In this document: positions 1-64,000 of the stretch, piece by piece
Layout: the number at the start of each line of letters is the position of its first letter
Position numbering within the stretch: the stretch's first letter is position 1
Assembly: GCA_964057225.1 (NCBI GenBank)
Contig: OZ059895.1
Coordinates: forward strand, 21,514,001-21,578,000
DNA: 64,000 nucleotides
Direction of reading: 5' to 3'
Source of the DNA: Auanema rhodensis
Lineage: Eukaryota > Animalia > Nematoda
Translations under genes and position numbers: made by a program
Notes under the pieces: generated by a model
What the model saw: the letters and a program-made list of their open reading frames with translations, nothing else
Databases searched by the model: none
What the model was told of the DNA's origin: nothing

Positions 1-3000
1 CCGAGATATCAACTGATATAAGTTCACACTTATATCCTCGATTTTCACCCTGAGGAATTGATTTTTTCGTTGAATAACATTGTCCATCGTCTTTGCCTTG
101 AAAAAAGGAATCTAAAAACATCTACTTTTGCTAGATTATTTTGAAATTTCTCGAAAAAATTTTTGTCAAAATGTTTTTGGAAGCAATGTTGAGTGTACAT
201 GGAAACTCAACATACACTAATGCATAATTTTTCAAACGATCATAACTAATTTTTGTATTAAGCGTTTCTCAGTGTAGTATAGTGCATTCGATGCGGATTT
301 TTAAGCTGCGTCGATCTGTGTTATCAGATTTGCGCTAGCTTAAAAATGCACCGAGATATCAACTGATATAAGTTCACACTTATATCCTCGATTTTCACCC
401 TGAAGAATTGATTTTTTCGTTGAATAACATTGTCCATCGTCTTTGCCTTAAAAAAAGGAATCTAAAAACATCTACTTTTGCTAAATTATTTTGAAATTTT
501 TCGAAAAAATTTTTGTCAAAATGTTTTTGGAAGCAATGTTGAGTGTACATGGAAACTCAACATACACTAATGCATCATTTTTCAAACGATCATAACTAAT
601 TTTTCTATAAAGCGTTTCTCAATGTAGTATAGTGCATTCGATGCGGATTTTTAAGCTGCGTCGATCTGTGTTATCAGATTTGCGCTAGCTTAAAAATGCA
701 CCGAGATATCAACTGATATAAGTTCACACTTATATCCTCGATTTTCACCCTGAAGAATTAATTTTTTCGTTGAATAACATTGTCTATCGTCTTTGCCTTA
801 AAAAAAGGAATCTAAAAACATCTACTTTTTGATAAATTATTTTAAAATTTTTCGAAAAAATTTTTGTCAAAATGTTTTTGGAAGCAATGTTGAGTGTACA
901 TGGAAACTCAACATACACTAATGCATAATTTTTCAAACGATCATAACTAATTTTTGTATTAAGCGTTTCTCAGTGTAGTATAGTGCATTCGATGCGGATT
1001 TTTAAGCTGCGTCGATCTGTGTTATCAGATTTGCGCTAGCTTAAAAATGCACCGAGATATCAACTGATATAAGTTCACACTTATATCCTCGATTTTCACC
1101 CTGAAGAATTGATTTTTTCGTTGAATAACATTGTCCATCGTCTTTGCCTTGAAAAAAGGAATCTAAAAACATCTACTTTTGCTAGATTATTTTGAAATTT
1201 CTCGAAAAAATTTTTGTCAAAATGTTTTTGGAAGCAATGTTGAGTGTACATGGAAACTCAACATACACTAATGCATCATTTTTCAAACGATCATAACTAA
1301 TTTTTCTATAAAGCGTTTCTCAATGTAGTATAGTGCATTCGATGCGGATTTTTAAGCTGCGTCGATCTGTGTTATCAGATTTGCGCTAGCTTAAAAATGC
1401 ACCGAGATATCAACTGATATAAGTTCACACTTATATCCTCGATTTTCACCCTGAAGAATTAATTTTTTCGTTGAATAACATTGTCCATCGTCTTTGCCTT
1501 AAAAAAAGGAATCTAAAAACATCTACTTTTTGATGAATTATTTTAAAATTTTTCGAAAAAATTTTTGTCAAAATGTTTTTGGAAGCAATGTTGAGTGTAC
1601 ATGGAAACTCAACATACACTAATGCATAATTTTTCAAACGATCATAACTAATTTTTGTATTAAGCGTTTCTCAATGTAGTATAGTGCATTCGATGCGGAT
1701 TTTTAAGCTGCGTCGATCTGTGTTATCAGATTTGCGCTAGCTTAAAAATGCACCGAGATATCAACTGATATAAGTTCACACTTATATCCTCGATTTTCAC
1801 CCTGAAGAATTAATTTTTTCGTTGAATAACATTGTCCATCGTCTTTGCCTTAAAAAAAGGAATCTAAAAACATCTACTTTTTGATAAATTATTTTAAAAT
1901 TTTTCGAAAAAATTTTTGTCAAAATGTTTTTGGAAGCAATGTTGAGTGTACATGGAAACTCAACATACACTAATGCATAATTTTTCAAACGATCATAACT
2001 AATTTTTGTATTAAGCGTTTCTCAATGTAGTATAGTGCATTCGATGCGGATTTTTGAGCTGCGTCGATCTGTGTTATCAGATTTGCGCTAGCTTAAAAAT
2101 GCACCGAGATATCAACTGATATAAGTTCACACTTATATCCTCGATTTTCACCCTGAAGAATTAATTTTTTCGTTGAATAACAATGTCCATCGTCTTTGCC
2201 TTGAAAAAAGGAATCTAAAAACATCTACTTTTTGCTAAATTATATTGAAATTTTTCGAAAAAATTTTTGTCAAAATGTTTTTGGAAGCAATGTTGAGTGT
2301 ACATGGAAACTCAACATACACTAATGCATCATTTTTCAAACGATCATAACTAATTTTTCTATAAAGCGTTTCTCAATGTAGTATAGTGCATTCGATGCGG
2401 ATTTTTAAGCTGCGTCGATCTGTGTTATCAGATTTGCGCTAGCTTAAAAATGCACCGAGATATCAACTGATATAAGTTCACACTTATATCCTCGATTTTC
2501 ACCCTGAAGAATTAATTTTTTCGTTGAATAACATTGTCCATCGTCTTTGCCTTAAAAAAAGGAATCTAAAAACATCTACTTTTTGATAAATTATTTTAAA
2601 ATTTTTCGAAAAAATTTTTGTCAAAATGTTTTTGGAAGCAATGTTGAGTGTACATGGAAACTCAACATACACTAATGCATAATTTTTCAAACGATCATAA
2701 CTAATTTTTGTATTAAGCGTTTCTCAATGTAGTATAGTGCATCCGATGCGGATTTTTAAGCTGCGTCGATCTGTGTTATCAGATTTGCGCTAGCTTAAAA
2801 ATGCACCGAGATATCAACTGATATAAGTTCACACTTATATCCTCGATTTTCACCCTGAAGAATTAATTTTTTCGTTGAATAACATTGTCCATCGTCTTTG
2901 CCTTAAAAAAAGGAATCTAAAAACATCTACTTTTTGATAAATTATTTTAAAATTTTTCGAAAAAATTTTTGTCAAAATGTTTTTGGAAGCAATGTTGAGT

Positions 3001-6000
3001 GTACATGGAAACTCAACATACACTAATGCATAATTTTTCAAACGATCATAACTAATTTTTGTATTAAGCGTTTCTCAATGTAGTATAGTGCATTCGATGC
3101 GGATTTTTGAGCTGCGTCGATCTGTGTTATCAGATTTGCGCTAGCTTAAAAATGCACCGAGATATCAACTGATATAAGTTCACACTTATATCCTCGATTT
3201 TCACCCTGAAGAATTAATTTTTTCGTTGAATAACAATGTCCATCGTCTTTGCCTTGAAAAAAGGAATCTAAAAACATCTACTTTTTGCTAAATTATATTG
3301 AAATTTTTCGAAAAAATTTTTGTCAAAATGTTTTTGGAAGCAATGTTGAGTGTACATGGAAACTCAACATACACTAATGCATCATTTTTCAAACGATCAT
3401 AACTAATTTTTCTATAAAGCGTTTCTCAATGTAGTATAGTGCATTCGATGCGGATTTTTAAGCTGCGTCGATCTGTGTTATCAGATTTGCGCTAGCTTAA
3501 AAATGCACCGAGATATCAACTGATATAAGTTCACACTTATATCCTCGATTTTCACCCTGAGGAATTGATTTTTTCGTTGAATAACATTGTCCATCGTCTT
3601 TGCCTTGAAAAAAGGAATCTAAAAACATCTACTTTTGCTAGATTATTTTGAAATTTCTCGAAAAAATTTTTGTCAAAATGTTTTTGGAAGCAATGTTGAG
3701 TGTACATGGAAACTCAACATACACTAATGCATAATTTTTCAAACGATCATAACTAATTTTTGTATTAAGCGTTTCTCAGTGTAGTATAGTGCATTCGATG
3801 CGGATTTTTAAGCTGCGTCGATCTGTGTTATCAGATTTGCGCTAGCTTAAAAATGCACCGAGATATCAACTGATATAAGTTCACACTTATATCCTCGATT
3901 TTCACCCTGAAGAATTGATTTTTTCGTTGAATAACATTGTCCATCGTCTTTGCCTTAAAAAAAGGAATCTAAAAACATCTACTTTTGCTAAATTATTTTG
4001 AAATTTTTCGAAAAAATTTTTGTCAAAATGTTTTTGGAAGCAATGTTGAGTGTACATGGAAACTCAACATACACTAATGCATCATTTTTCAAACGATCAT
4101 AACTAATTTTTCTATAAAGCGTTTCTCAATGTAGTATAGTGCATTCGATGCGGATTTTTAAGCTGCGTCGATCTGTGTTATCAGATTTGCGCTAGCTTAA
4201 AAATGCACCGAGATATCAACTGATATAAGTTCACACTTATATCCTCGATTTTCACCCTGAAGAATTAATTTTTTCGTTGAATAACATTGTCTATCGTCTT
4301 TGCCTTAAAAAAAGGAATCTAAAAACATCTACTTTTTGATAAATTATTTTAAAATTTTTCGAAAAAATTTTTGTCAAAATGTTTTTGGAAGCAATGTTGA
4401 GTGTACATGGAAACTCAACATACACTAATGCATAATTTTTCAAACGATCATAACTAATTTTTGTATTAAGCGTTTCTCAGTGTAGTATAGTGCATTCGAT
4501 GCGGATTTTTAAGCTGCGTCGATCTGTGTTATCAGATTTGCGCTAGCTTAAAAATGCACCGAGATATCAACTGATATAAGTTCACACTTATATCCTCGAT
4601 TTTCACCCTGAAGAATTGATTTTTTCGTTGAATAACATTGTCCATCGTCTTTGCCTTGAAAAAAGGAATCTAAAAACATCTACTTTTGCTAGATTATTTT
4701 GAAATTTCTCGAAAAAATTTTTGTCAAAATGTTTTTGGAAGCAATGTTGAGTGTACATGGAAACTCAACATACACTAATGCATCATTTTTCAAACGATCA
4801 TAACTAATTTTTCTATAAAGCGTTTCTCAATGTAGTATAGTGCATTCGATGCGGATTTTTAAGCTGCGTCGATCTGTGTTATCAGATTTGCGCTAGCTTA
4901 AAAATGCACCGAGATATCAACTGATATAAGTTCACACTTATATCCTCGATTTTCACCCTGAAGAATTAATTTTTTCGTTGAATAACATTGTCCATCGTCT
5001 TTGCCTTAAAAAAAGGAATCTAAAAACATCTACTTTTTGATGAATTATTTTAAAATTTTTCGAAAAAATTTTTGTCAAAATGTTTTTGGAAGCAATGTTG
5101 AGTGTACATGGAAACTCAACATACACTAATGCATAATTTTTCAAACGATCATAACTAATTTTTGTATTAAGCGTTTCTCAATGTAGTATAGTGCATTCGA
5201 TGCGGATTTTTAAGCTGCGTCGATCTGTGTTATCAGATTTGCGCTAGCTTAAAAATGCACCGAGATATCAACTGATATAAGTTCACACTTATATCCTCGA
5301 TTTTCACCCTGAAGAATTAATTTTTTCGTTGAATAACATTGTCCATCGTCTTTGCCTTAAAAAAAGGAATCTAAAAACATCTACTTTTTGATAAATTATT
5401 TTAAAATTTTTCGAAAAAATTTTTGTCAAAATGTTTTTGGAAGCAATGTTGAGTGTACATGGAAACTCAACATACACTAATGCATAATTTTTCAAACGAT
5501 CATAACTAATTTTTGTATTAAGCGTTTCTCAATGTAGTATAGTGCATTCGATGCGGATTTTTGAGCTGCGTCGATCTGTGTTATCAGATTTGCGCTAGCT
5601 TAAAAATGCACCGAGATATCAACTGATATAAGTTCACACTTATATCCTCGATTTTCACCCTGAAGAATTAATTTTTTCGTTGAATAACAATGTCCATCGT
5701 CTTTGCCTTGAAAAAAGGAATCTAAAAACATCTACTTTTTGCTAAATTATATTGAAATTTTTCGAAAAAATTTTTGTCAAAATGTTTTTGGAAGCAATGT
5801 TGAGTGTACATGGAAACTCAACATACACTAATGCATCATTTTTCAAACGATCATAACTAATTTTTCTATAAAGCGTTTCTCAATGTAGTATAGTGCATTC
5901 GATGCGGATTTTTAAGCTGCGTCGATCTGTGTTATCAGATTTGCGCTAGCTTAAAAATGCACCGAGATATCAACTGATATAAGTTCACACTTATATCCTC

Positions 6001-51900: not shown

Positions 51901-54900
51901 CACACTTATATCCTCGATTTTCACCCTGAAGAATTAATTTTTTCGTTGAATAACATTGTCCATCGTCTTTGCCTTGAAAAAAGGAATCTAAAAACATCTA
52001 CTTTTGCTAGATTATTTTGAAATTTCTCGAAAAAATTTTTGTCAAAATGTTTTTGGAAGCAATGTTGAGTGTACATGGAAACTCAACATACACTAATGCA
52101 TCATTTTTCAAACGATCATAACTAATTTTTCTATAAAGCGTTTCTCAATGTAGTATAGTGCATTCGATGCGGATTTTTAAGCTGCGTCGATCTGTGTTAT
52201 CAGATTTGCGCTAGCTTAAAAATGCACCGAGATATCAACTGATATAAGTTCACACTTATATCCTCGATTTTCACCCTGAAGAATTGATTTTTTCGTTGAA
52301 TAACATTGTCCATCGTCTTTGCCTTGAAAAAAGGAATCTAAAAACATCTACTTTTGCTAGATTATTTTGAAATTTCTCGAAAAAATTTTTGTGAAAATGT
52401 TTTTGGAAGCAATGTTGAGTGTACATGGAAACTCAACATACACTAATGCATCATTTTTCAAACGATCATAACTAATTTTTGTATTAAGCGTTTCTCAGTG
52501 TAGTATAGTGCATTCGATGCGGATTTTTAAGCTGCGTCGATCTGTGTTATCAGATTTGCGCTAGCTTAAAAATGCACCGAGATATCAACTGATATAAGTT
52601 CACACTTATATCCTCGATTTTCACCCTGAAGAATTGATTTTTTCGTTGAATAACATTGTCCATCGTCTTTGCCTTGAAAAAAGGAATCTAAAAACATCTA
52701 CTTTTGCTAGATTATTTTGAAATTTCTCGAAAAAATTTTTGTCAAAATGTTTTTGGAAGCAATGTTGAGTGTACATGGAAACTCAACATACACTAATGCA
52801 TCATTTTTCAAACGATCATAACTAATTTTTCTATAAAGCGTTTCTCAATGTAGTATAGTGCATTCGATGCGGATTTTTAAGCTGCGTCGATCTGTGTTAT
52901 CAGATTTGCGCTAGCTTAAAAATGCACCGAGATATCAACTGATATAAGTTCACACTTATATCCTCGATTTTCACCCTGAAGAATTAATTTTTTCGTTGAA
53001 TAACATTGTCCATCGTCTTTGCCTTGAAAAAAGGAATCTAAAAACATCTACTTTTGCTAGATTATTTTGAAATTTCTCGAAAAAATTTTTGTCAAAATGT
53101 TTTTGGAAGCAATGTTGAGTGTACATGGAAACTCAACATACACTAATGCATCATTTTTCAAACGATCATAACTAATTTTTCTATAAAGCGTTTCTCAATG
53201 TAGTATAGTGCATTCGATGCGGATTTTTAAGCTGCGTCGATCTGTGTTATCAGATTTGCGCTAGCTTAAAAATGCACCGAGATATCAACTGATATAAGTT
53301 CACACTTATATCCTCGATTTTCACCCTGAAGAATTGATTTTTTCGTTGAATAACATTGTCCATCGTCTTTGCCTTGAAAAAAGGAATCTAAAAACATCTA
53401 CTTTTGCTAGATTATTTTAAAATTTTTCGAAAAAATTTTTGTCAAAATGTTTTTGGAAGCAATGTTGAGTGTACATGGAAACTCAACATACACTAATGCA
53501 TCATTTTTCAAACGATCATAACTAATTTTTCTATAAAGCGTTTCTCAATGTAGTATAGTGCATTCGATGCGGATTTTTATGCTGCGTCGATCTGTGTTAT
53601 CAGATTTGCGCTAGCTTAAAAATGCACCGAGATATCAACTGATATAAGTTCACACTTATATCCTCGATTTTCACCCTGAAGAATTAATTTTTTCGTTGAA
53701 TAACATTGTCCATCGTCTTTGCCTTGAAAAAAGGAATCTAAAAACATCTACTTTTGCTAGATTATTTTGAAATTTCTCGAAAAAATTTTTGTCAAAATGT
53801 TTTTGGAAGCAATGTTGAGTGTACATGGAAACTCAACATACACTAATGCATCATTTTTCAAACGATCATAACTAATTTTTCTATAAAGCGTTTCTCAATG
53901 TAGTATAGTGCATTCGATGCGGATTTTTAAGCTGCGTCGATCTGTGTTATCAGATTTGCGCTAGCTTAAAAATGCACCGAGATATCAACTGATATAAGTT
54001 CACACTTATATCCTCGATTTTCACCCTGAAGAATTGATTTTTTCGTTGAATAACATTGTCCATCGTCTTTGCCTTGAAAAAAGGAATCTAAAAACATCTA
54101 CTTTTGCTAGATTATTTTGAAATTTCTCGAAAAAATTTTTGTCAAAATGTTTTTGGAAGCAATGTTGAGTGTACATGGAAACTCAACATACACTAATGCA
54201 TCATTTTTCAAACGATCATAACTAATTTTTGTATTAAGCGTTTCTCAGTGTAGTATAGTGCATTCGATGCGGATTTTTAAGCTGCGTCGATCTGTGTTAT
54301 CAGATTTGCGCTAGCTTAAAAATGCACCGAGATATCAACTGATATAAGTTCACACTTATATCCTCGATTTTCACCCTGAAGAATTGATTTTTTCGTTGAA
54401 TAACATTGTCCATCGTCTTTGCCTTGAAAAAAGGAATCTAAAAACATCTACTTTTGCTAGATTATTTTGAAATTTCTCGAAAAAATTTTTGTCAAAATGT
54501 TTTTGGAAGCAATGTTGAGTGTACATGGAAACTCAACATACACTAATGCATCATTTTTCAAACGATCATAACTAATTTTTCTATAAAGCGTTTCTCAATG
54601 TAGTATAGTGCATTCGATGCGGATTTTTAAGCTGCGTCGATCTGTGTTATCAGATTTGCGCTAGCTTAAAAATGCACCGAGATATCAACTGATATAAGTT
54701 CACACTTATATCCTCGATTTTCACCCTGAAGAATTAATTTTTTCGTTGAATAACATTGTCCATCGTCTTTGCCTTAAAAAAAGGAATCTAAAAACATCTA
54801 CTTTTTGATAAATTATTTTAAAATTTTTCGAAAAAATTTTTGTCAAAATGTTTTTGGAAGCAATGTTGAGTGTACATGGAAACTCAACATACACTAATGC

Positions 54901-57047
54901 ATAATTTTTCAAACGATCATAACTAATTTTTGTATTAAGCGTTTCTCAGTGTAGTATAGTGCATTCGATGCGGATTTTTAAGCTGCGTCGATCTGTGTTA
55001 TCAGATTTGCGCTAGCTTGCAAATGCACCGAGATATCAACTGATATAAGTTCACACTTATATCCTCGATTTTCACCCTGAAGAATTGATTTTTTCGTTGA
55101 ATAACATTGTCCATCGTCTTTGCTTTGAAAAAAGGAATCTAAAAACATCTACTTTCGCTAGATTATTTTGAAATTTCTCGAAAAAATTTTTGTCAAAATA
55201 TTTTTGGAAGCAATGTTGAGTGTACATGGAAACTCAACATACACTAATGCATCATTTTTCAAACAATCATAACTAATTTTTGTATTAAGCGTTTCTCAGT
55301 GTAGTATAGTGCATTCGATGCGGATTTTTAAGCTGCGTCGATCTGTGTTATCAGATTTGCGCTAGCTTGAAAATGCACCGAGATATCAACTGATATAAGT
55401 TCACACTTATATCCTCGATTTTCACCCTGAAGAATTGATTTTTTCGTTGAATAACATTGTCCATCGTCTTTGCCTTGAAAAAAGGAATCTAAAAACATCT
55501 ACTTTCGCTAGATTATTTTGAAATTTCTCGAAAAAATTTTTGTCAAAATGTTTTTGGAAGCAATGTTGAGTGTACATGGAAACTCAACATACACTAATGC
55601 ATCATTTTTCAAACGATCATAACTAATTTTTGTATTAAGCGTTTCTCAGTGTAGTATAGTGCATTCGATGCGGATTTTTGAGCTGCGTCGATCTGTGTTA
55701 TCAGATTTGCGCTAGCTTAAAAATGCACCGAGATATCAACTGATATAAGTTCACACTTATATCCTCGATTTTCACCCTGAAGAATTAATTTTTTCGTTGA
55801 ATAACAATGTCCATCGTCTTTGCCTTGAAAAAAGGAATCTAAAAACATCTACTTTTTGCTAAATTATATTGAAATTTTTCGAAAAAATTTTTGTCAAAAT
55901 GTTTTTGGAAGCAATGTTGAGTGTACATGGAAACTCAACATACACTAATGCATCATTTTTCAAACGATCATAACTAATTTTTCTATAAAGCGTTTCTCAA
56001 TGTAGTATAGTGCATTCGATGCGGATTTTTAAGCTGCGTCGATCTGTGTTATCAGATTTGCGCTAGCTTAAAAATGCACCGAGATATCAACTGATATAAG
56101 TTCACACTTATATCCTCGATTTTCACCCTGAGGAATTGATTTTTTCGTTGAATAACATTGTCCATCGTCTTTGCCTTGAAAAAAGGAATCTAAAAACATC
56201 TACTTTTGCTAGATTATTTTGAAATTTCTCGAAAAAATTTTTGTCAAAATGTTTTTGGAAGCAATGTTGAGTGTACATGGAAACTCAACATACACTAATG
56301 CATCATTTTTCAAACGATCATAACTAATTTTTCTATAAAGCGTTTCTCAATGTAGTATAGTGCATTCGATGCGGATTTTTAAGCTGCGTCGATCTGTGTT
56401 ATCAGATTTGCGCTAGCTTAAAAATGCACCGAGATATCAACTGATATAAGTTCACACTTATATCCTCGATTTTCACCCTGAAGAATAGATTTTTTCGTTG
56501 AATAACATTGTCCATCGTCTTTGCCTTGGAAAAATGAATCTAAAAACATCTACTTTTGCTAGATTATTTTGAAATTTCTCGAAAAAATTTTTGTCAAAAT
56601 GTTTTTGGAAGCAATGTTGAGTGTACATGGAAACTCAACATACACTAATGCATCATTTTTCAAACGATCATAACTAATTTTTCTATAAAGCGTTTCTCAA
56701 TGTAGTATAGTGCATTCGATGCGGATTTTTAAGCTGCGTCGATCTGTGTTATCAGATTTGCGCTAGCTTAAAAATGCACCGAGATATCAACTGATATAAG
56801 TTCACACTTATATCCTCGATTTTCACCCTGAGGAATTGATTTTTTCGTTGAATAACATTGTCCATCGTCTTTGCCTTGAAAAAAGGAATCTAAAAACATC
56901 TACTTTTGCTAGATTATTTTGAAATTTCTCGAAAAAATTTTTGTCAAAATGTTTTTGGAAGCAATGTTGAGTGTACATGGAAACTCAACATACACTAATG
57001 CATCATTTTTCAAACGATCATAACTAATTTTTCTATAAAGCGTTTCT
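1..57047 (+). repeat. Satellite DNA tandem array, 350/351-bp monomer, 162 full monomers + 269-bp partial
   Basis: Monomer start CCGAGATATCAACTGATATAAG recurs at 1, 351, 701, 1052 ... 56779. Monomers differ by a few SNPs and a 1-bp T-run indel. The array ends at ...AAAGCGTTTCT (57047), where the next base departs from the consensus (G instead of C). Confidence 0.99.
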
Positions 57048-57982
57048 GACTATCGACTGAAGCACCCTTGTTACAGGAGTGCACAACCATCCGTAGAAAT
57101 GTTAGCGTTACCCGAATGGAACCTGGGACAGTGCATGTTCACAGTACGACGAGTTAATAACCTATGATATTACCCTGTTGTTTCCCGGAGGTCTTTCTAC
57201 TTCAAGTTACCAGCTTACTGTTCTTACCCAGATGTTCGCCACATCCATTCAGCTGATTCAGAATTATCTACTATAAGAGTAAACTCAAATAGAATAGTCT
57301 CGCAAAGACACATCCACCGATCTTCCTGGTGGAGATTCATCGAAGTTAATTTTTCCCGAAGGAACTTAAATGGGCTTTAATTACTCTATCAGTTCCTAAT
57401 ACAGCACTACGTTGGATTCTCTCCAAGAGGTAGATAGTTTCATCATGACTTATAGTAGGAAGTCTTTTCAAGTGCTCAAGAGAGCTCTCAGTTACTTCAC
57501 CACCACACCCTACCACAACAGGTACCACATGCACAGTTGAACCATACATGTTCTGTAACTCCCGAGCCAAAGATAACCCTGGAGGATACGGTAGCACATG
57601 TGTGTCAGATAAGCACGAATTTACCGCGTATTTATTATACTTACGACTGATGTTTTCATCTATCCTGGTAATCCAAGATATGCCAATCTCAATAATATAT
57701 ATTGCTTTCCTCGAAGAATCATGGTAAACAATATCTGGTCTATAATGATCCAGCTTATTTGGGGTATCGAAGTACCTGTCCCACCATATCGTCTTGTCAC
57801 CGTTCGTTTGTACTACCGGAACTTTCTGAGTATGATGTATCGTTTGGAAACCAAACTTTTTACAGAGCCAATAATAGATATTTCGAGCCGCGCTATTATG
57901 TCTGTCTAACATTAAGGTTGGGCGAAATTGCGGACAGCATGAAACAACATGTTCCGGAGTTTCTCTAGGAGCAGAACAAAGT
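57048..57982 (-). mobile_element. 5'-truncated inverted copy (935 bp) of the same retrotransposon, equivalent to 62005-62939
   Basis: Reverse complement of 62005-62939; mirror coordinates sum to 119987 (e.g. stop codons at 57346 and 62641). The match ends at ...CAGAACAAAGT (57982), inside the codons for the CRLC motif. Confidence 0.98.
57346..57982 (-). pseudogene. C-terminal fragment of the retrotransposon ORF (partial knuckle + endonuclease domain; 188-aa ORF from internal Met at 57912)
   Basis: The 188-aa translation is identical to the last 188 aa of the 1270-aa ORF. It lacks RT and the N-terminus. Confidence 0.9.
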
Positions 57983-58003
57983 TTTTTTTTTCAAACAAAT
58001 TCC

Positions 58004-58074
58004 GGGAACTCACAGTCTTGACCTTCACGTGGTGGTTCCCGAGGATTACACTTTGTGTAAGAGCTAACGAAGGC
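58004..58074 (+). ncRNA. HDV-like self-cleaving ribozyme at the element 5' end; predicted cleavage between 58003 and 58004
   Basis: P1 GGGAACT(58004-10)/GGTTCCC(58034-40). P2 GTCTTG(58015-20)/C[G]AAGGC(58068-74, one bulge). P3 ACC(58021-23)/GGT(58031-33). L3 TTCACGT. P1.1 TC/GA(58041-42). P4 TTACAC-TTT-GTGTAA. J4/2 GCTAA with catalytic C58064. The order of elements matches the HDV double pseudoknot. Confidence 0.88.
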
Positions 58075-58828
58075 AACAAACGTGTTTCACGTATGTCGTA
58101 GGGCTTGCTGGTGTCAGTAACCCCTGCTAGTTAAGAATTATGGCAGCATTCCGATTCGGTATCCGTTAGTTTTTAAAAGTTTCGAAAACTTATAGTAGGA
58201 ATGTTTGGAATTGGACGGTGAAGGTGTTCACGGAGAGATGTTCGATATTCTAAAGATTATATAAATTGTCATTTGGCAGCGAAACCACTGATGATAAATA
58301 TACGAACAGAGATAGACATTAACGCCTTTGTCTGGAATAAGAGGTTTTAGCCCTCTGACCGGGGAATTGCAATTTAATAGAAATTGAAGTTGTCACTGTT
58401 TACACAGCGGCAGAGCACCTCTTGATGATATATGTGGTAAGAGGAATTGGAGCAAATCAATGTGATCTACTAGGTTCAGTTTGTGGATTTGATATTTCTT
58501 CGACTTTTAAAAATTTTGATTCAACACGCTCAGCCACTTTGTGGTTTGCCTCTGAGACCATAAGAGGTTCTCTCTTATTGGTAATCTAGTTGAATCTCTT
58601 CCAGCTTGATTGATGAGTTACAAAAGTGTCCCAAAAAAGTAACAGTCAATAGGGACATGCTTTAGGTCAAAGCTGCGGGAGCGTAGGGCACGTTCCCAGG
58701 GTCGAATTCTATTTAGAATATCCCCTACGTCCCGGTCAAAGGATCGAATGGTGAGAGCCTATAGGGAGGCTGTACGTGGTTTCATTAAAGGTTAGAGCTG
58801 CCTTGTCACCACGGGAATATAAACGCTT

Positions 58829-61800
58829 ATGAAGAGATATTCCTCTAGACCTGTAGCCGCTCAGGAAAAAAGCGGGGTCCGACTACCTAATGTCGATGCC
58901 GTCACACCGCAGTTGCCTGATGGAAATGAAAGCCCCGTTGAGGGTGAAGTTTCAATAACTGTGGGTAGGGAACTTGCTGGTCAAGTTCGAGACACGAGGT
59001 GGAGCACGCAGGAAGATATTGTTCTCTGGAGTCTAACTGAGACATATCGCTCAAGGGACGTCAAAGTTTCTTGGATAACTGTGAGTGAAGCCTGGAATGT
59101 CGAAGTTAATAGCGATGGTGTGAAAAAACGCACCAAGGGGGCTTTGTCCTCTCGGTACTCTTCGTTAAAGAAGATTGGAGGTCCTGTTTCCATGCCTTCG
59201 GGTTGTACCGTTGCAAGGGGTGAACCATCATGTGTTGATGAAAGTAGTGAAAGTAGTCCGGAGATTAGTATACTCACTCCGGACGCCAATAATATTCGGG
59301 AGGCTATGTGTCTTAGTACCTTACCCTCCTTAGGTTCTATAACTTTAGTTGGAGACGACCTTGACACAATTGAACATTCAATTGAGCCTGAAGTTGAGGT
59401 TGAATCTGGCTTATTAGATAATGATATTGTTGTGAACGCAGATTGCGAACGAATATGTGAAGAGGTGAGAGAAGGAGGGAGAGAAGAGAGAGAGAATAGG
59501 GGCAGCGAGGGAAATGACTCGTGCGATATTGAACAAGAAAGAGAATTCCGCAAGGTTTTTAATGACATTATGGTTCGAAATCGCTGCAAGTATACGAGAA
59601 AAATCCCTAGTAAGGTGAATCGAAAAATTCCCGATAGACTTATGCATTTAGCGAATGAGGTTGTGCTACACGCTGTAAACATGCTGAAAAGTTTCGAAGC
59701 TGTAAACTGTGCTGTGTATGCTGCATCTGTAGCGGTCACGACGGTGATAAAGTCTGAGTGCTTGGAGGCGGAAATTACTCGTGAATGGTTTGAAAAGAAT
59801 GAAGAGAAGCAAAAAGTGATCCGTCAAGAGCTTGGTTGGATAGCCCAGGAATTACGGCGACGTGATCTAAAAGTGAATCCTACAAGGCGACAAGTGGTGA
59901 TTTTGCGTTTCTTAAAAAAGGTTGGAAAACCTACGGAATCAAACCTGCAACGTAGATATGAATGTCTAGTGGAGAGATTAAATAATCTTAAAACGATGAA
60001 GGACGCACGATCTGCGGAAATAAAAAGGCGCAAACTTCGGAAACTTGGTGCTAAGCGAGTCGTTGAAGATGAACCTGAATTGTCTGCAAACCCTGATGCC
60101 AATGCTACACTGCAGTATTGGAAGAACATTGTTGGAGTTGAGAGAAAGTTTAAAGCATTGCCCATTCTCAGACAATGGGGTGAGCATGCGAAAAATGTCA
60201 CGAGTAACTCCTCCTCAGTGTGTGTTTGGACAGAAAGTTGGAGAGAGGTGATGAGTAAGACCAAACCTTGGAAAGCGCCAGGGCCTGATGGAATACGAGC
60301 TTTTTGGTGGAAGGCTTTGCCGGCTGCTAATCAGTTTCTTTCTACATGGACTTGTAAAATGCTGGAAGGATTGGAAATATTTCCAGAATGGGTAGCCCGC
60401 GGGAGAATTGTGATGATTCCCAAAGGCAATGGCGCCTCAGATCCTAAGGATCAAAGGCCGATAGCGTGCTTGAATATAGCCGCCAAGTGTCTAACTGCAA
60501 TGTTAGCTAAAAAGATTAAGCCAGCCCTTGACTTGGTTATTCCTAGTGAACAAAGAGCTTTAAAAGAAAAAGAATGGGGTGTAACCCATGCGAGAGTACT
60601 TGACGCCACTGTGTTAGCTGATTTTCGCTTTGGAAAAAGTGGAAAGCAACTACACTGTGCGTGGATAGATTATTCGAAAGCCTTTGATTCGGTGCCCCAT
60701 GGTTACATCATATGGCTTTTAGCCAAATGTGGGATTTGCGCCAACTACAGGAATCTCTATAGTAAATCTCTGAGAGCTCTTACTTATCAGTATGAAGTGA
60801 GAGGGAAGTTCGTGAGTGTTAAGAGTGGACCATTAAAGGTTAAATGTGGGATTCCACAGGGTGATACGTTGTCTCCACTATTGTTTTGTCTAGCTGTTTC
60901 ACCAATATCATATCTATTAAGAAACGAAAGCGGTTACCGTGTAAGTCACGGCGCGAGCAGTAAGGGGCCTGCTAAATTAAGTATATCACACATATATTAT
61001 GTTGATGACTTAAAACTTTATGCTTCTTCGCGAAGTATATTGTTTAAAAACATAAGGTCTGTGCGGAAACTCTCTAAAGCTATTAATTTAGATCTTAATC
61101 CCAAAAAATGTGCTACCATACATTTGGGAACTCAGTCAGGATTGGGCTGTGACGAAATCCCGATCTTATCTAGTGCGTATAAATACTTAGGGATTGAACA
61201 AGCTAGTGTAGATTGTGCGGACAAAGCTTTAGAGAGAGTAGAGAGAACGTTGCTGGGTCGATTGGAGAAACTGTGGGAAAGTGAGCTTACTCATCATGAG
61301 AAAGTTCATTACTATAATACTGCGATAATTCCCGCCTTCACATTTGTCGTTCAGAATATGTTCGTCAATGAGGGCCAAAGATCGAAGACTGAGTCCATTC
61401 TCAAGTGGAGCAGGGAGACTGACATGAAAGTGCGTACGGTTTTAGTGAAGACTAAAGCTCGTTATCGTACTTGTAATGCTGGTCGTTTGTACCTACCCCC
61501 TGAAGATTTGGGTCTTGGTTTGAAATCACTCGAGGAGATGGTGGAAAATGCCTTTATATATGCTTATGCGTATGTCGCCACTACCCCCTCACTGCAGTTT
61601 TCCTATAGTCTATTCGAGAGACACAGCAAGCGTGGCAAAAAGACCATTGTTTCAGCTTTCAATAAAGTTATAGATCGTTATGTGATAACAGTTGAAAGAC
61701 ACTGTGAAAGAGCGATACCATCACTTATTATTAATGGGAACACGTTCGAAGGTCCCAGGGATGCGGCTCGAGCCATGATATCAGTACTGTGTGATCAAAG

Positions 61801-62641
61801 GAGAACGCAGAGGCTTGAAAACTGGTTAAGTAAAAGCGCAGCATCGATGGTATATGGCGTAGCAAATATTAATATTAGTATGTCAGGTTTATGGTTAGAA
61901 AAAGGATTGGTAAATAGCAAGACGGTGCGTAACATACTTGCTTTGCAGGAGTTCCAGCTCATTACTCGGTCCCATGTGGCGTCCGGTACTTGTGCGGGAT
62001 GTAGACTTTGTTCTGCTCCTAGAGAAACTCCGGAACATGTTGTTTCATGCTGTCCGCAATTTCGCCCAACCTTAATGTTAGACAGACATAATAGCGCGGC
62101 TCGAAATATCTATTATTGGCTCTGTAAAAAGTTTGGTTTCCAAACGATACATCATACTCAGAAAGTTCCGGTAGTACAAACGAACGGTGACAAGACGATA
62201 TGGTGGGACAGGTACTTCGATACCCCAAATAAGCTGGATCATTATAGACCAGATATTGTTTACCATGATTCTTCGAGGAAAGCAATATATATTATTGAGA
62301 TTGGCATATCTTGGATTACCAGGATAGATGAAAACATCAGTCGTAAGTATAATAAATACGCGGTAAATTCGTGCTTATCTGACACACATGTGCTACCGTA
62401 TCCTCCAGGGTTATCTTTGGCTCGGGAGTTACAGAACATGTATGGTTCAACTGTGCATGTGGTACCTGTTGTGGTAGGGTGTGGTGGTGAAGTAACTGAG
62501 AGCTCTCTTGAGCACTTGAAAAGACTTCCTACTATAAGTCATGATGAAACTATCTACCTCTTGGAGAGAATCCAACGTAGTGCTGTATTAGGAACTGATA
62601 GAGTAATTAAAGCCCATTTAAGTTCCTTCGGGAAAAATTAA
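58829..62641 (+). CDS. 1270-aa retrotransposon protein: Myb/SANT-like domain, reverse transcriptase, CCHC zinc knuckle, PD-(D/E)xK-type restriction-like endonuclease
   Basis: RT motifs KAPGPDGI (60272), RPIACLN, WIDYSKAFDSVPH, GIPQGDTLSPLLF, HIYYVDDLKLYA (YVDD at 60998-61009), YKYLGI, RLYLPPEDLGLGL. Knuckle CRLCSAPRETPEHVVSCC (62000-62053), then RHN. Endonuclease RPDIVYHD...IYIIEIGI...RKYNKY (from 62246). No internal stops. Confidence 0.97.
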   Translation: MKRYSSRPVAAQEKSGVRLPNVDAVTPQLPDGNESPVEGEVSITVGRELAGQVRDTRWSTQEDIVLWSLTETYRSRDVKVSWITVSEAWNVEVNSDGVKKRTKGALSSRYSSLKKIGGPVSMPSGCTVARGEPSCVDESSESSPEISILTPDANNIREAMCLSTLPSLGSITLVGDDLDTIEHSIEPEVEVESGLLDNDIVVNADCERICEEVREGGREERENRGSEGNDSCDIEQEREFRKVFNDIMVRNRCKYTRKIPSKVNRKIPDRLMHLANEVVLHAVNMLKSFEAVNCAVYAASVAVTTVIKSECLEAEITREWFEKNEEKQKVIRQELGWIAQELRRRDLKVNPTRRQVVILRFLKKVGKPTESNLQRRYECLVERLNNLKTMKDARSAEIKRRKLRKLGAKRVVEDEPELSANPDANATLQYWKNIVGVERKFKALPILRQWGEHAKNVTSNSSSVCVWTESWREVMSKTKPWKAPGPDGIRAFWWKALPAANQFLSTWTCKMLEGLEIFPEWVARGRIVMIPKGNGASDPKDQRPIACLNIAAKCLTAMLAKKIKPALDLVIPSEQRALKEKEWGVTHARVLDATVLADFRFGKSGKQLHCAWIDYSKAFDSVPHGYIIWLLAKCGICANYRNLYSKSLRALTYQYEVRGKFVSVKSGPLKVKCGIPQGDTLSPLLFCLAVSPISYLLRNESGYRVSHGASSKGPAKLSISHIYYVDDLKLYASSRSILFKNIRSVRKLSKAINLDLNPKKCATIHLGTQSGLGCDEIPILSSAYKYLGIEQASVDCADKALERVERTLLGRLEKLWESELTHHEKVHYYNTAIIPAFTFVVQNMFVNEGQRSKTESILKWSRETDMKVRTVLVKTKARYRTCNAGRLYLPPEDLGLGLKSLEEMVENAFIYAYAYVATTPSLQFSYSLFERHSKRGKKTIVSAFNKVIDRYVITVERHCERAIPSLIINGNTFEGPRDAARAMISVLCDQRRTQRLENWLSKSAASMVYGVANINISMSGLWLEKGLVNSKTVRNILALQEFQLITRSHVASGTCAGCRLCSAPRETPEHVVSCCPQFRPTLMLDRHNSAARNIYYWLCKKFGFQTIHHTQKVPVVQTNGDKTIWWDRYFDTPNKLDHYRPDIVYHDSSRKAIYIIEIGISWITRIDENISRKYNKYAVNSCLSDTHVLPYPPGLSLARELQNMYGSTVHVVPVVVGCGGEVTESSLEHLKRLPTISHDETIYLLERIQRSAVLGTDRVIKAHLSSFGKN
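58997..59173 (+). other. Putative N-terminal Myb/SANT-like DNA-binding domain (aa ~57-115)
   Basis: RWSTQEDIVLWSL...VSWITVSEAWN...KRTKGALSSRYSSLKK matches the Myb repeat pattern W-(S/T)-x-x-E-D-x-x-L ... W ... R-T ... R-(W/Y). Confidence 0.7.
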
Positions 62642-62939
62642 CTTCGATGAATCTCCACCAGGAAGATCGGTGGATGTGTCTTTGCGAGACTATTCTATTT
62701 GAGTTTACTCTTATAGTAGATAATTCTGAATCAGCTGAATGGATGTGGCGAACATCTGGGTAAGAACAGTAAGCTGGTAACTTGAAGTAGAAAGACCTCC
62801 GGGAAACAACAGGGTAATATCATAGGTTATTAACTCGTCGTACTGTGAACATGCACTGTCCCAGGTTCCATTCGGGTAACGCTAACATTTCTACGGATGG
62901 TTGTGCACTCCTGTAACAAGGGTGCTTCAGTCGATAGTC
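62642..62939 (+). other. Element 3' UTR with several stem-loops and no poly(A) or simple-repeat tail
   Basis: Lies between the stop codon and the satellite junction. Hairpins: TCCACC..GGTGGA, GATGT-GGCGA-ACATC, GCACTC..GGGTGC. Ends ...CTTCAGTCGATAGTC|AGAAACG. Confidence 0.75.
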
Positions 62940-64000
62940 AGAAACGCTTTATAGAAAAATTAGTTATGATCGTTTGAAAAATGATGCATTAGTGTATGTT
63001 GAGTTTCCATGTACACTCAACATTGCTTCCAAAAACATTTTGACAAAAATTTTTTCGAGAAATTTCAAAATAATCTAGCAAAAGTAGATGTTTTTAGATT
63101 CCTTTTTTCAAGGCAAAGACGATGGACAATGTTATTCAACGAAAAAATCAATTCCTCAGGGTGAAAATCGAGGATATAAGTGTGAACTTATATCAGTTGA
63201 TATCTCGGTGCATTTTTAAGCTAGCGCAAATCTGATAACACAGATCGACGCAGCTTAAAAATCCGCATCGAATGCACTATACTACATTGAGAAACGCTTT
63301 ATAGAAAAATTAGTTATGATCGTTTGAAAAATGATGCATTAGTGTATGTTGAGTTTCCATGTACACTCAACATTGCTTCCAAAAACATTTTGACAAAAAT
63401 TTTTTCGAGAAATTTCAAAATAATCTAGCAAAAGTAGATGTTTTTAGATTCATTTTTCCAAGGCAAAGACGATGGACAATGTTATTCAACGAAAAAATCT
63501 ATTCTTCAGGGTGAAAATCGAGGATATAAGTGTGAACTTATATCAGTTGATATCTCGGTGCATTTTTAAGCTAGCGCAAATCTGATAACACAGATCGACG
63601 CAGCTTAAAAATCCGCATCGAATGCACTATACTACATTGAGAAACGCTTTATAGAAAAATTAGTTATGATCGTTTGAAAAATGATGCATTAGTGTATGTT
63701 GAGTTTCCATGTACACTCAACATTGCTTCCAAAAACATTTTGACAAAAATTTTTTCGAGAAATTTCAAAATAATCTAGCAAAAGTAGATGTTTTTAGATT
63801 CCTTTTTTCAAGGCAAAGACGATGGACAATGTTATTCAACGAAAAAATCAATTCCTCAGGGTGAAAATCGAGGATATAAGTGTGAACTTATATCAGTTGA
63901 TATCTCGGTGCATTTTTAAGCTAGCGCAAATCTGATAACACAGATCGACGCAGCTTAAAAATCCGCATCGAATGCACTATACTACATTGAGAAACGCTTT
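62940..64000 (-). repeat. Same 350-bp satellite in inverted orientation (about 3 monomers, runs off window end)
   Basis: AGAAACGCTTTATAGAAAAATTAGTTATGATCG... at 62940 is the reverse complement of the monomer from position 269 backwards, and it repeats every 350 bp (62940, 63290, 63640). Confidence 0.99.

Follow-up and report, generated by a model that had tools for sequence, protein, structure and literature searches.

A 64-kb window of the genome of the nematode Auanema rhodensis (C3:21,514,001-21,578,000, in an assembly of 181 Mb) holds a probable R2/R4-like element, a non-LTR retrotransposon (one that lacks long terminal repeats) specific for 28S ribosomal DNA (rDNA), which here lies off target in an array of a 350-bp satellite. 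The array is co-directional apart from a reversed patch of 10 kb, and the element lies at this patch. To the following explanation we give slightly better than an even chance: the joining of the 5' end of the new insertion failed, the finished complementary DNA (cDNA) snapped back on itself, copying went on via the 3' junction into flanking satellite, and the polarity of the array was regained by a second fold-back. Coordinates below are those of the window, and positions above 64000 lie beyond it (on the piece designated L031). The sequence examined comprises the window plus 20 kb on its left and 100 kb on its right, about 184 kb in total.

A reversed patch in the satellite array

The satellite runs in the forward orientation from at least 20 kb to the left of the window through 57047, where the array stops with GCGTTTCT; the nick site lies directly after this word. 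The final 2,613 bp of this forward satellite, referred to as A (54435-57047, plus strand), are the satellite portion of the left mirror arm. They are followed by an antisense copy of the 3'-terminal 935 bp of the element (57048-57982, minus strand), which mirrors 62005-62939 with 100% complementarity, and then by a 21-nt filler at the first junction, J1 (57983-58003), made up of nine T residues and CAAACAAATTCC. The full-length element, of 4,936 bp, occupies 58004-62939 on the plus strand; it begins with its usual 5' end, GGGAAC, at 58004, and carries an intact open reading frame (ORF) of 1,270 aa at 58829-62641, also on the plus strand. Its last 935 bp (62005-62939, plus strand) are the element portion of the right mirror arm, and 62005 is the landing point of the putative snap-back. 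The reversed satellite opens with AGAAACGC at 62940. Its first part, A', is a perfect inverted copy of A that fills 62940-64000 (minus strand) and continues to 65552 (L031:1552). Its second part, B', is an inverted copy of the right flank (65553-67976; L031:1553-3976) and ends at the second junction, J2 (67976/67977; L031:3976/3977). Then come an 837-bp spacer, S (L031:3977-4813), and B, the right-flank source of B' (68814-71237; L031:4814-7237). The reversed satellite measures 5,037 bp in all (62940-67976); forward satellite adjoins it directly at 67977 and extends for 73 kb. The assembled path contains no Ns or gaps.

An earlier, sequence-only reading of the window had described the full-length element and the 935-bp 3' fragment as joined head-to-head, with both element 3' ends (...GATAGTC) adjoining one and the same satellite nucleotide (monomer position 269) and with the other half of the satellite site, CAATGTAG, missing from both 3' junctions. 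The junction sequences and an inverted-repeat search bear this description out. The same reading took the structure for a large inverted duplication and for a switch of the satellite strand, and it proposed to measure the arms beyond 64000; when this was done, the duplication proved to be small and the switch not to be a lasting one. In the window, the inverted-repeat search returned arms at 55987-57982 and 62005-64000, each of 1,996 nt, 100% complementary and limited solely by the window edge. An ungapped mirror comparison gave a perfect mirror of 3,548 nt per arm (54435-57982 and 62005-65552), past which mirror identity falls to the normal divergence between monomers, and at 67976/67977 the forward orientation is back. 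The J1 arms are separated by a 4,022-bp spacer, which includes the 21-nt filler at the junction.

The reversed patch is a mosaic. Its distal 2,424 bp (65553-67976) mirror the right flank (68814-71237) with 1 mismatch across the 837-bp spacer, and J2 has a microhomology of 1 nt. The switch from A' to B' occurs in register within a 19-bp window of shared identity (65534-65552), from which we conclude that the two pieces were joined homologously. The next-best direct copies in the 184 kb reach 98.85% for A and 98.7% for the right-flank source. No other direct copy of the left-arm satellite exceeds 98.85%, and chance therefore does not account for the perfect mirror. Both pairs indeed appear, from their identity, to be recent copies, since the arms agree at 100% over 3,548 nt that include a unique variant and B' differs from B at only 1 of 2,424 positions, while paralogs stand at 98.7-98.9%. 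J1 and J2 alike show identical or near-identical inverted arms, a single-copy spacer and little microhomology; that is, both are fold-back inversions with a spacer. The J1 word is unique genome-wide, and these two are the only orientation switches in the 184 kb of array. Simple inversion and staggered-break inversion were rejected, because the duplicated arms do not lie at both ends of the inverted block.

The same satellite array also contains a long terminal repeat (LTR) retrotransposon, at about 140,700-148,400 (L039/L040), whose ORF (L040:18-3899, 1,294 aa) encodes RVT_1, RNase H, integrase zinc-binding and rve domains. The satellite has the same direction on both sides of it, and it therefore serves as an internal control: an ordinary insertion leaves the array unflipped.

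Two variants in the monomers tie the flanks to each other. The variant CCTTGGAAAAATG occurs in the 184 kb only at 56524 and at its mirror, 63451. The variant GAATAGAT has a single left-hand occurrence (56483) and four in the right flank (68382, 70484, 70834 and 72235, all within 4.3 kb); it is also present twice in the mirror copy of the right flank and once, as a chance match outside the satellite, at 141143, and is otherwise absent from the 184 kb. The rare variant monomer that the earlier reading had noticed in the two immediate flanks and not elsewhere in the array is thus confined to them for CCTTGGAAAAATG but not for GAATAGAT, which recurs in the right flank. Because the GAATAGAT cluster lies on both sides of the insertion, the flanks must have been neighbors before the event, and it is the same locus that was rejoined and not a distant one. 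The right flank resumes 81 nt (modulo 350) past the nick site. Breakage-fusion-bridge was rejected on these grounds: the mirror does not go beyond 3,548 nt, the satellite is forward again from 67977 on, and the cluster of local variants lies across the site.

The filler (57983-58003) is absent from all other copies of the element, whose matches begin at query position 20-22, and 10 nt of it match satellite sequence that lies 42 nt upstream of the nick site. Derivation of the filler from 28S, or its being part of the element, were both rejected. Fillers at the 5' junction are also seen at other copies, e.g., one of 17 nt in L002, where the junction (L002:1452-1502) shows in addition a deletion of upstream 28S; the copies in L008 and L011 are joined to other 28S regions. 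A low-depth contig of run X10 (organism D) could be placed on 57801-57999, ending inside the filler; it continues for at least 255 nt into CGTTGTGCATTTTTTTC..., a sequence absent from the A. rhodensis genome.

A proposed snap-back of the cDNA and competing explanations

J1 joins an internal antisense position of the element (62005), via the filler, to the exact element 5' end that is shared with at least 10 copies. That is, the 5' end is fused to the reverse complement of its own cDNA sequence, with normal 3' junctions at the nick site, as in a snap-back 5' junction. A notional inversion of the 4,022-bp spacer gives a locus in which forward satellite is followed by the full-length element in antisense, the filler, an additional 5,972 bp and again forward satellite, the additional DNA consisting of 935 bp of the element sense strand, the left-flank mirror and the right-flank mirror. 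This extra inverted DNA has the cDNA 3' end exactly on one side and the upstream target end exactly on the other, and that boundary is where both inverted tracts begin. Both breakpoints are thus of the free-end type, the signature of two unjoined ends, i.e., of a failure in the final step of target-primed reverse transcription. The 5' 4 kb of the cDNA form one of the two loops, and this identifies the lesion that started the process as well as the polarity that the first end had.

In the course of events that we favor, the R2/R4-like element would have nicked one satellite monomer at a site that weakly resembles its rDNA target. Target-primed reverse transcription would have started at the GCGTTTCT-3'OH and yielded a full-length cDNA plus the 21-nt filler, but the cDNA end would have failed to join the upstream target DNA. 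The cDNA 3' end would then have annealed to its own strand and primed synthesis at a point 935 nt away from the 3' junction (62005), and the snapped-back strand would have been extended past that junction into 2.6 kb of resected flanking satellite. Carrying reversed satellite polarity, the new strand could have been reconnected to the other break end only via a second inversion. The second mirror tract, in which 2.4 kb of right-flank sequence are inverted around an 837-bp loop of resection-tract size, may have arisen by inverted pairing with the other break end or by an independent fold-back of the resected reciprocal end, and satellite homology would have closed the two reversed pieces, at a target loss of at least 81 bp (97 bp with the expected 16-bp overlap), modulo 350. 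The spacer could have reached its orientation by a flip, through recombination between the perfect 3.5-kb arms, by replication of the hairpin, which may give either isomer, or by hairpin opening on the old strand. The layout of the locus, the rDNA specificity of the element, the free-end character of both breakpoints and the mosaic make-up of the patch are established; the order of these events, the polymerases that acted and the route by which the 4,022-bp spacer acquired the orientation it now has are inferred. A snap-back of the cDNA at 62005 with extension into the satellite had already been suggested from the letters of the window. What upholds that suggestion is the position of J1 at the full-length 5' end plus filler, the identity of the arms through the 3' junction, and the free-end-type breakpoint at the upstream target end; the observed orientation needs an extra step.

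This orientation is the first of several observations that weigh against our reconstruction. The full-length copy stands beside the mirrored flank in the assembly, and simple snap-back extension does not directly produce this arrangement. Microhomology at J1 amounts to no more than one base. The element copy, furthermore, has four substitutions and one indel of its own, and the arms have none. These private changes, relative to all rDNA copies, are four transitions at 58807, 59743, 60604 and 60768 (C, G, C and C in the window versus T, A, T and T) and a 1-nt indel in the T-run at 58514-58517; one of the substitutions alters the protein (F647S). At these sites, several related organisms have the rDNA alleles in the Logan contigs of their public runs. 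That the changes fall outside the arms only calls for errors of the reverse transcriptase, an unsampled source copy or homogenization of the arms; RNA editing may also have contributed, and homogenization may mask the age of the arms. Lastly, among the pieces listed for 57001-63000 in the Logan contigs of four public runs, none extends across J1 or across a satellite/element junction. Loose contig ends at 57047 and 62940 in these runs represent uninterrupted satellite or the rDNA junction. We regard the missing junction pieces as a lack of support, not as a refutation.

The distribution of private changes, as if the duplication were younger than the insertion, would also fit a history in which a complete, ordinary insertion came first and a later, unrelated break or replication template switch made the double fold-back, with its breakpoint at the element 5' junction. 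The element does form a second head-to-head arrangement, in rDNA (described below), whose breakpoints are internal to the element and show 8- and 4-nt microhomology, typical of template switching and not of target-primed reverse transcription. Nevertheless, the later break would need to have fallen exactly at the boundary of filler and target, and the background rate of such events is low, given that the only two orientation switches in the 184 kb are both found here. We consider this history quite unlikely.

The orientation of the spacer, in turn, follows directly from a route via sister chromatids or a replicated end, in which both sisters are cut at the target, or the end extended by target-primed reverse transcription is replicated, a 935-nt cDNA on one copy and a full-length cDNA on the other are tethered head-to-head, and the palindrome is resolved by recombination with the folded-back reciprocal end. 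This route is model 2 of one study of L1 (PMC11702581) and the L1 model of another (PMC7058536). Copies of the element that are truncated at the 5' end, like the 935-nt piece, are common. However, two cDNAs and a chromosome-scale palindromic intermediate are needed, whereas the restoration seen here is local, with a phase loss of less than one monomer and with arms of only 3.5 and 2.4 kb. No large duplication or terminal loss is seen, and the forward satellite continues for 73 kb. In our estimate, such a route has only a slim chance of being the correct one.

The missing junction pieces bear, finally, on the question of whether the arrangement exists at all. Chimeric long reads, for example inverted chimeras from whole-genome amplification of a small animal or fold-back reads, might have been built into the contig, in which case the true arrangement would be different, for instance a simple insertion. 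Satellite reads are not uniquely placeable, no independent run shows the junctions among the listed pieces, and the exact product of the 1,270-aa ORF has no match in the contigs of public assemblies. Amplification chimeras, moreover, look like fold-backs with kilobase-scale spacers and 0-1 nt of microhomology, and the other scrambled head-to-head arrangement of the element lies in rDNA, a misassembly-prone region. On the other hand, a random chimera would have to hit the boundary of filler and upstream target exactly, and on both strands, a coincidence of roughly one in thousands. Plain template-complement fold-back reads yield palindromes with zero spacer, not with spacers of 4,022 and 837 bp. 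With no Ns or gaps in the assembly, three junctions would all have to be artefactual in one path. Taking both sides into account, we judge an artefact of assembly or library to be unlikely, though it deserves to be taken seriously.

The element and its satellite site

A genome search with the central 4 kb of the element found matches at about 25 other places, nearly all of them on C8 at a spacing of 11.5 kb, and no other copy on C3. The other copies are flanked by eukaryotic large-subunit (LSU) rRNA sequence. The genome contains 25 element 3' ends, and only the two in the window lie outside rDNA loci. The 3' junction, ...GATAGTC followed by AGTGACGCGC, is identical at 22 of the 22 rDNA-locus ends that were read (C8:12607276 is not among these). 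Canonical full-length rDNA copies have a common 5' end and a 16-bp target-site duplication. The satellite copy has the same 5' and 3' ends as at least 10 rDNA copies, and it is this uniform 5' end in at least 10 copies by which the element's 5' end was defined. Its identity is 99.4-99.8% to nine full-length copies and 98.5% to that in L011. Three 5'-truncated copies (L018, L019 and L023) have a common 3' flank, in which 28S ends after 13 nt and unrelated sequence follows; this shared flank suggests a duplicated, rearranged unit.

The ORF of the satellite copy, free of stop codons and 1-2 aa different from its closest rDNA copies, encodes a Myb-like N-terminus, a reverse transcriptase, a CCHC zinc knuckle and a restriction-like endonuclease (RLE). 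RVT_1 is the sole Pfam family matched (E=4.5e-25); there is no match to Exo_endo_phos, that is, no apurinic/apyrimidinic endonuclease (APE), and the closest relatives in the PDB are R2 proteins (E=1e-21). The C-terminal 231 aa gave no match to the PDB with phmmer. An AlphaFold2 (AF2) model of the C-terminus, with a predicted local distance difference test (pLDDT) score of 81.8, had R2 structures as all seven of its best fold matches (E <= 0.001), with E=9e-9 to 3e-5 and TM values of 0.55-0.61 against the R2 endonuclease region, followed by PD-(D/E)xK cap-snatching nucleases. The C..C..H..C, RH, RPDI and K..Y columns are invariant in 5 homologues. The C-terminus is accordingly predicted, from model and motifs, to consist of a CCHC zinc knuckle and a PD-(D/E)xK restriction-like endonuclease.

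In rDNA the element inserts between the R2 and R1 sites, 25 bp downstream of the former, which would fit the R4 site, midway between R1 and R2. Like R4, of Ascaris and other nematodes, and like R2, the element has a single ORF with reverse transcriptase, CCHC and RLE; it lacks a poly(A) tail, its 3' junction in 28S is fixed while its 5' junctions vary, and many copies are truncated at the 5' end. It is best described as an RLE-type, site-specific non-LTR retrotransposon of the R2 superclade, putatively R4-like; a protein atlas and a homologue search gave no names or taxa useful for assigning it to a clade. A search of 56500-63500 against Rfam (E <= 0.1) found no family, including no ribozyme like that of hepatitis delta virus (HDV), although pairing of GGGAAC with GTTCCC is visible by eye.

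A 26-nt word spanning the nick site in the satellite occurs 50,623 times in forward and 47,272 times in reverse orientation in the genome, about 97,900 times altogether, from which we estimate that the 350-bp satellite makes up on the order of 34 Mb, or about one fifth of the assembly. Compared with the rDNA target, the satellite site matches at 6 of the first 8 downstream bases and has the AATGC block upstream. Because of this resemblance at the 3' junction, the satellite site was likely cleaved by the endonuclease of the element. It is a weak look-alike of the rDNA target and the only non-rDNA site of the element that was found. A site-specific element that targets the satellite was rejected, since about 97,900 sites are available and yet there is a single insertion event; this one insertion is an off-target accident. 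The sequence-only reading had seen in the locus, if real, a retrotransposon-linked route to satellite strand switches. The element is not linked to the satellite, however, and a general route of this kind is not supported.

An endonuclease of this specificity would give identical 3' junctions at each insertion, so the two 3' ends in the window might in principle stem from two independent, opposite insertions at the same satellite site, followed by recombination. The same reading had held that this would gain in likelihood if the mirror stopped after a few monomers and the variant monomer were common elsewhere. The mirror does end early, at roughly 7.5 monomers. The variant monomer, however, has no further occurrence, and the reversed tract goes over into a copy of the opposite flank, both of which argue against two insertions. 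The flanks, moreover, are inverted copies of one unique 2.6-kb stretch with a variant found nowhere else, and no other 3' ends of the element exist outside rDNA. Twin priming as known for L1 leaves co-directional flanks and duplicates neither the 3' end nor the flank. It was rejected, as the locus has a duplicated 3' end and flank, inverted flanks and no target-site duplication. Taken together, we regard two insertions or twin priming as highly improbable.

The second head-to-head arrangement of the element lies at C8:12,455,509-12,462,440 (L022, L026, L017 and L025 merged, plus L024 and L012), within rDNA and with inverted 28S flanks. It consists of an antisense portion (3470-4935 of the element), a 292-bp sense piece (3074-3365) and a sense copy (2096-4935) with a deletion of 3037-3703, and its joins have microhomologies of 8 and 4 nt. 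The sense copy and its flank are a 99.96% inverted copy of the right-hand neighbor, with a palindrome center of 1.3 kb.

Parallels and implications

Insertion by R2 protein in human cells (PRINT) gives rise to snap-back 5' junctions, often after synthesis of a full-length cDNA (PMC11371274; PMC11331408), and one junction class has target DNA fused to antisense element sequence (PMC11371274). The likeness to the locus described here extends to an R2-type reverse transcriptase with a restriction-like endonuclease and to a precise 3' junction (Zhang et al. 2024, PMC11371274; PMC11331408). The PRINT events, however, are somatic, were defined by short reads, and took place at the true rDNA target in cultured cells, whereas the A. 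rhodensis structure is a germline one, fixed or assembled, and off target in a satellite. In addition, its snap-back tract runs for 3.5 kb through the 3' junction into host DNA, and a second inverted copy of a flank closes it.

Foldback junctions with cDNA inserts are also known from L1, where the reciprocal end can fold back as well (PMC7058536; PMC11702581), and self-annealing cDNA hairpins, formed from a 3' end extended by target-primed reverse transcription, have been proposed for them (PMC11702581). These foldback inversions (Rodriguez-Martin et al. 2020, PMC7058536; Mendez-Dorantes et al. 2024 preprint, PMC11702581) resemble the locus in having cDNA at the foldback and two nearby breakpoints of the same orientation, in a possible foldback of the reciprocal end and in a spacer equal to a resection tract. 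They differ in that L1 uses an APE-type endonuclease, in contrast to the restriction-like endonuclease of the present element, and in that L1 events lead to large copy-number gains, isochromosomes or breakage-fusion-bridge cycles, whereas here the array has its polarity back after 10 kb and the chromosome runs on normally.

Both snap-back junctions and foldbacks bridged by a retrotransposon are already known. What would be new is their combination: a natural germline setting, an off-target rDNA element of the RLE type, a kilobase-scale run-through of the 3' junction, and a compensating second inversion. A broader proposal, namely that failed 5' joining by the element's endonuclease and reverse transcriptase, with the cDNA retained or not, recurrently initiates double fold-back patches and strand switches throughout the satellites of this nematode, is in our view a long shot. 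If it were true, this locus would be the one case in which the cDNA was left behind as proof, in parallel with the insertion-free foldbacks associated with L1 ORF2p.

If the assembly is right, the locus would be a base-resolved, heritable example of the rescue of unfinished target-primed reverse transcription, for which the evidence to date consists only of junction classes in short reads from engineered R2 insertion and of L1 copy-number scars in tumors. It would mean that a snap-back tract can extend kilobases past the 3' junction into host DNA, and that reversed polarity within a tandem array forces a second inversion, the outcome being a small reversed patch and not a chromosome-scale duplication. 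That an rDNA-specific R-element acted off target, at a degenerate site, also bears on the use of R2-type proteins for gene insertion. For fold-back patches in satellites, the locus would then provide a dated and polarized reference case.

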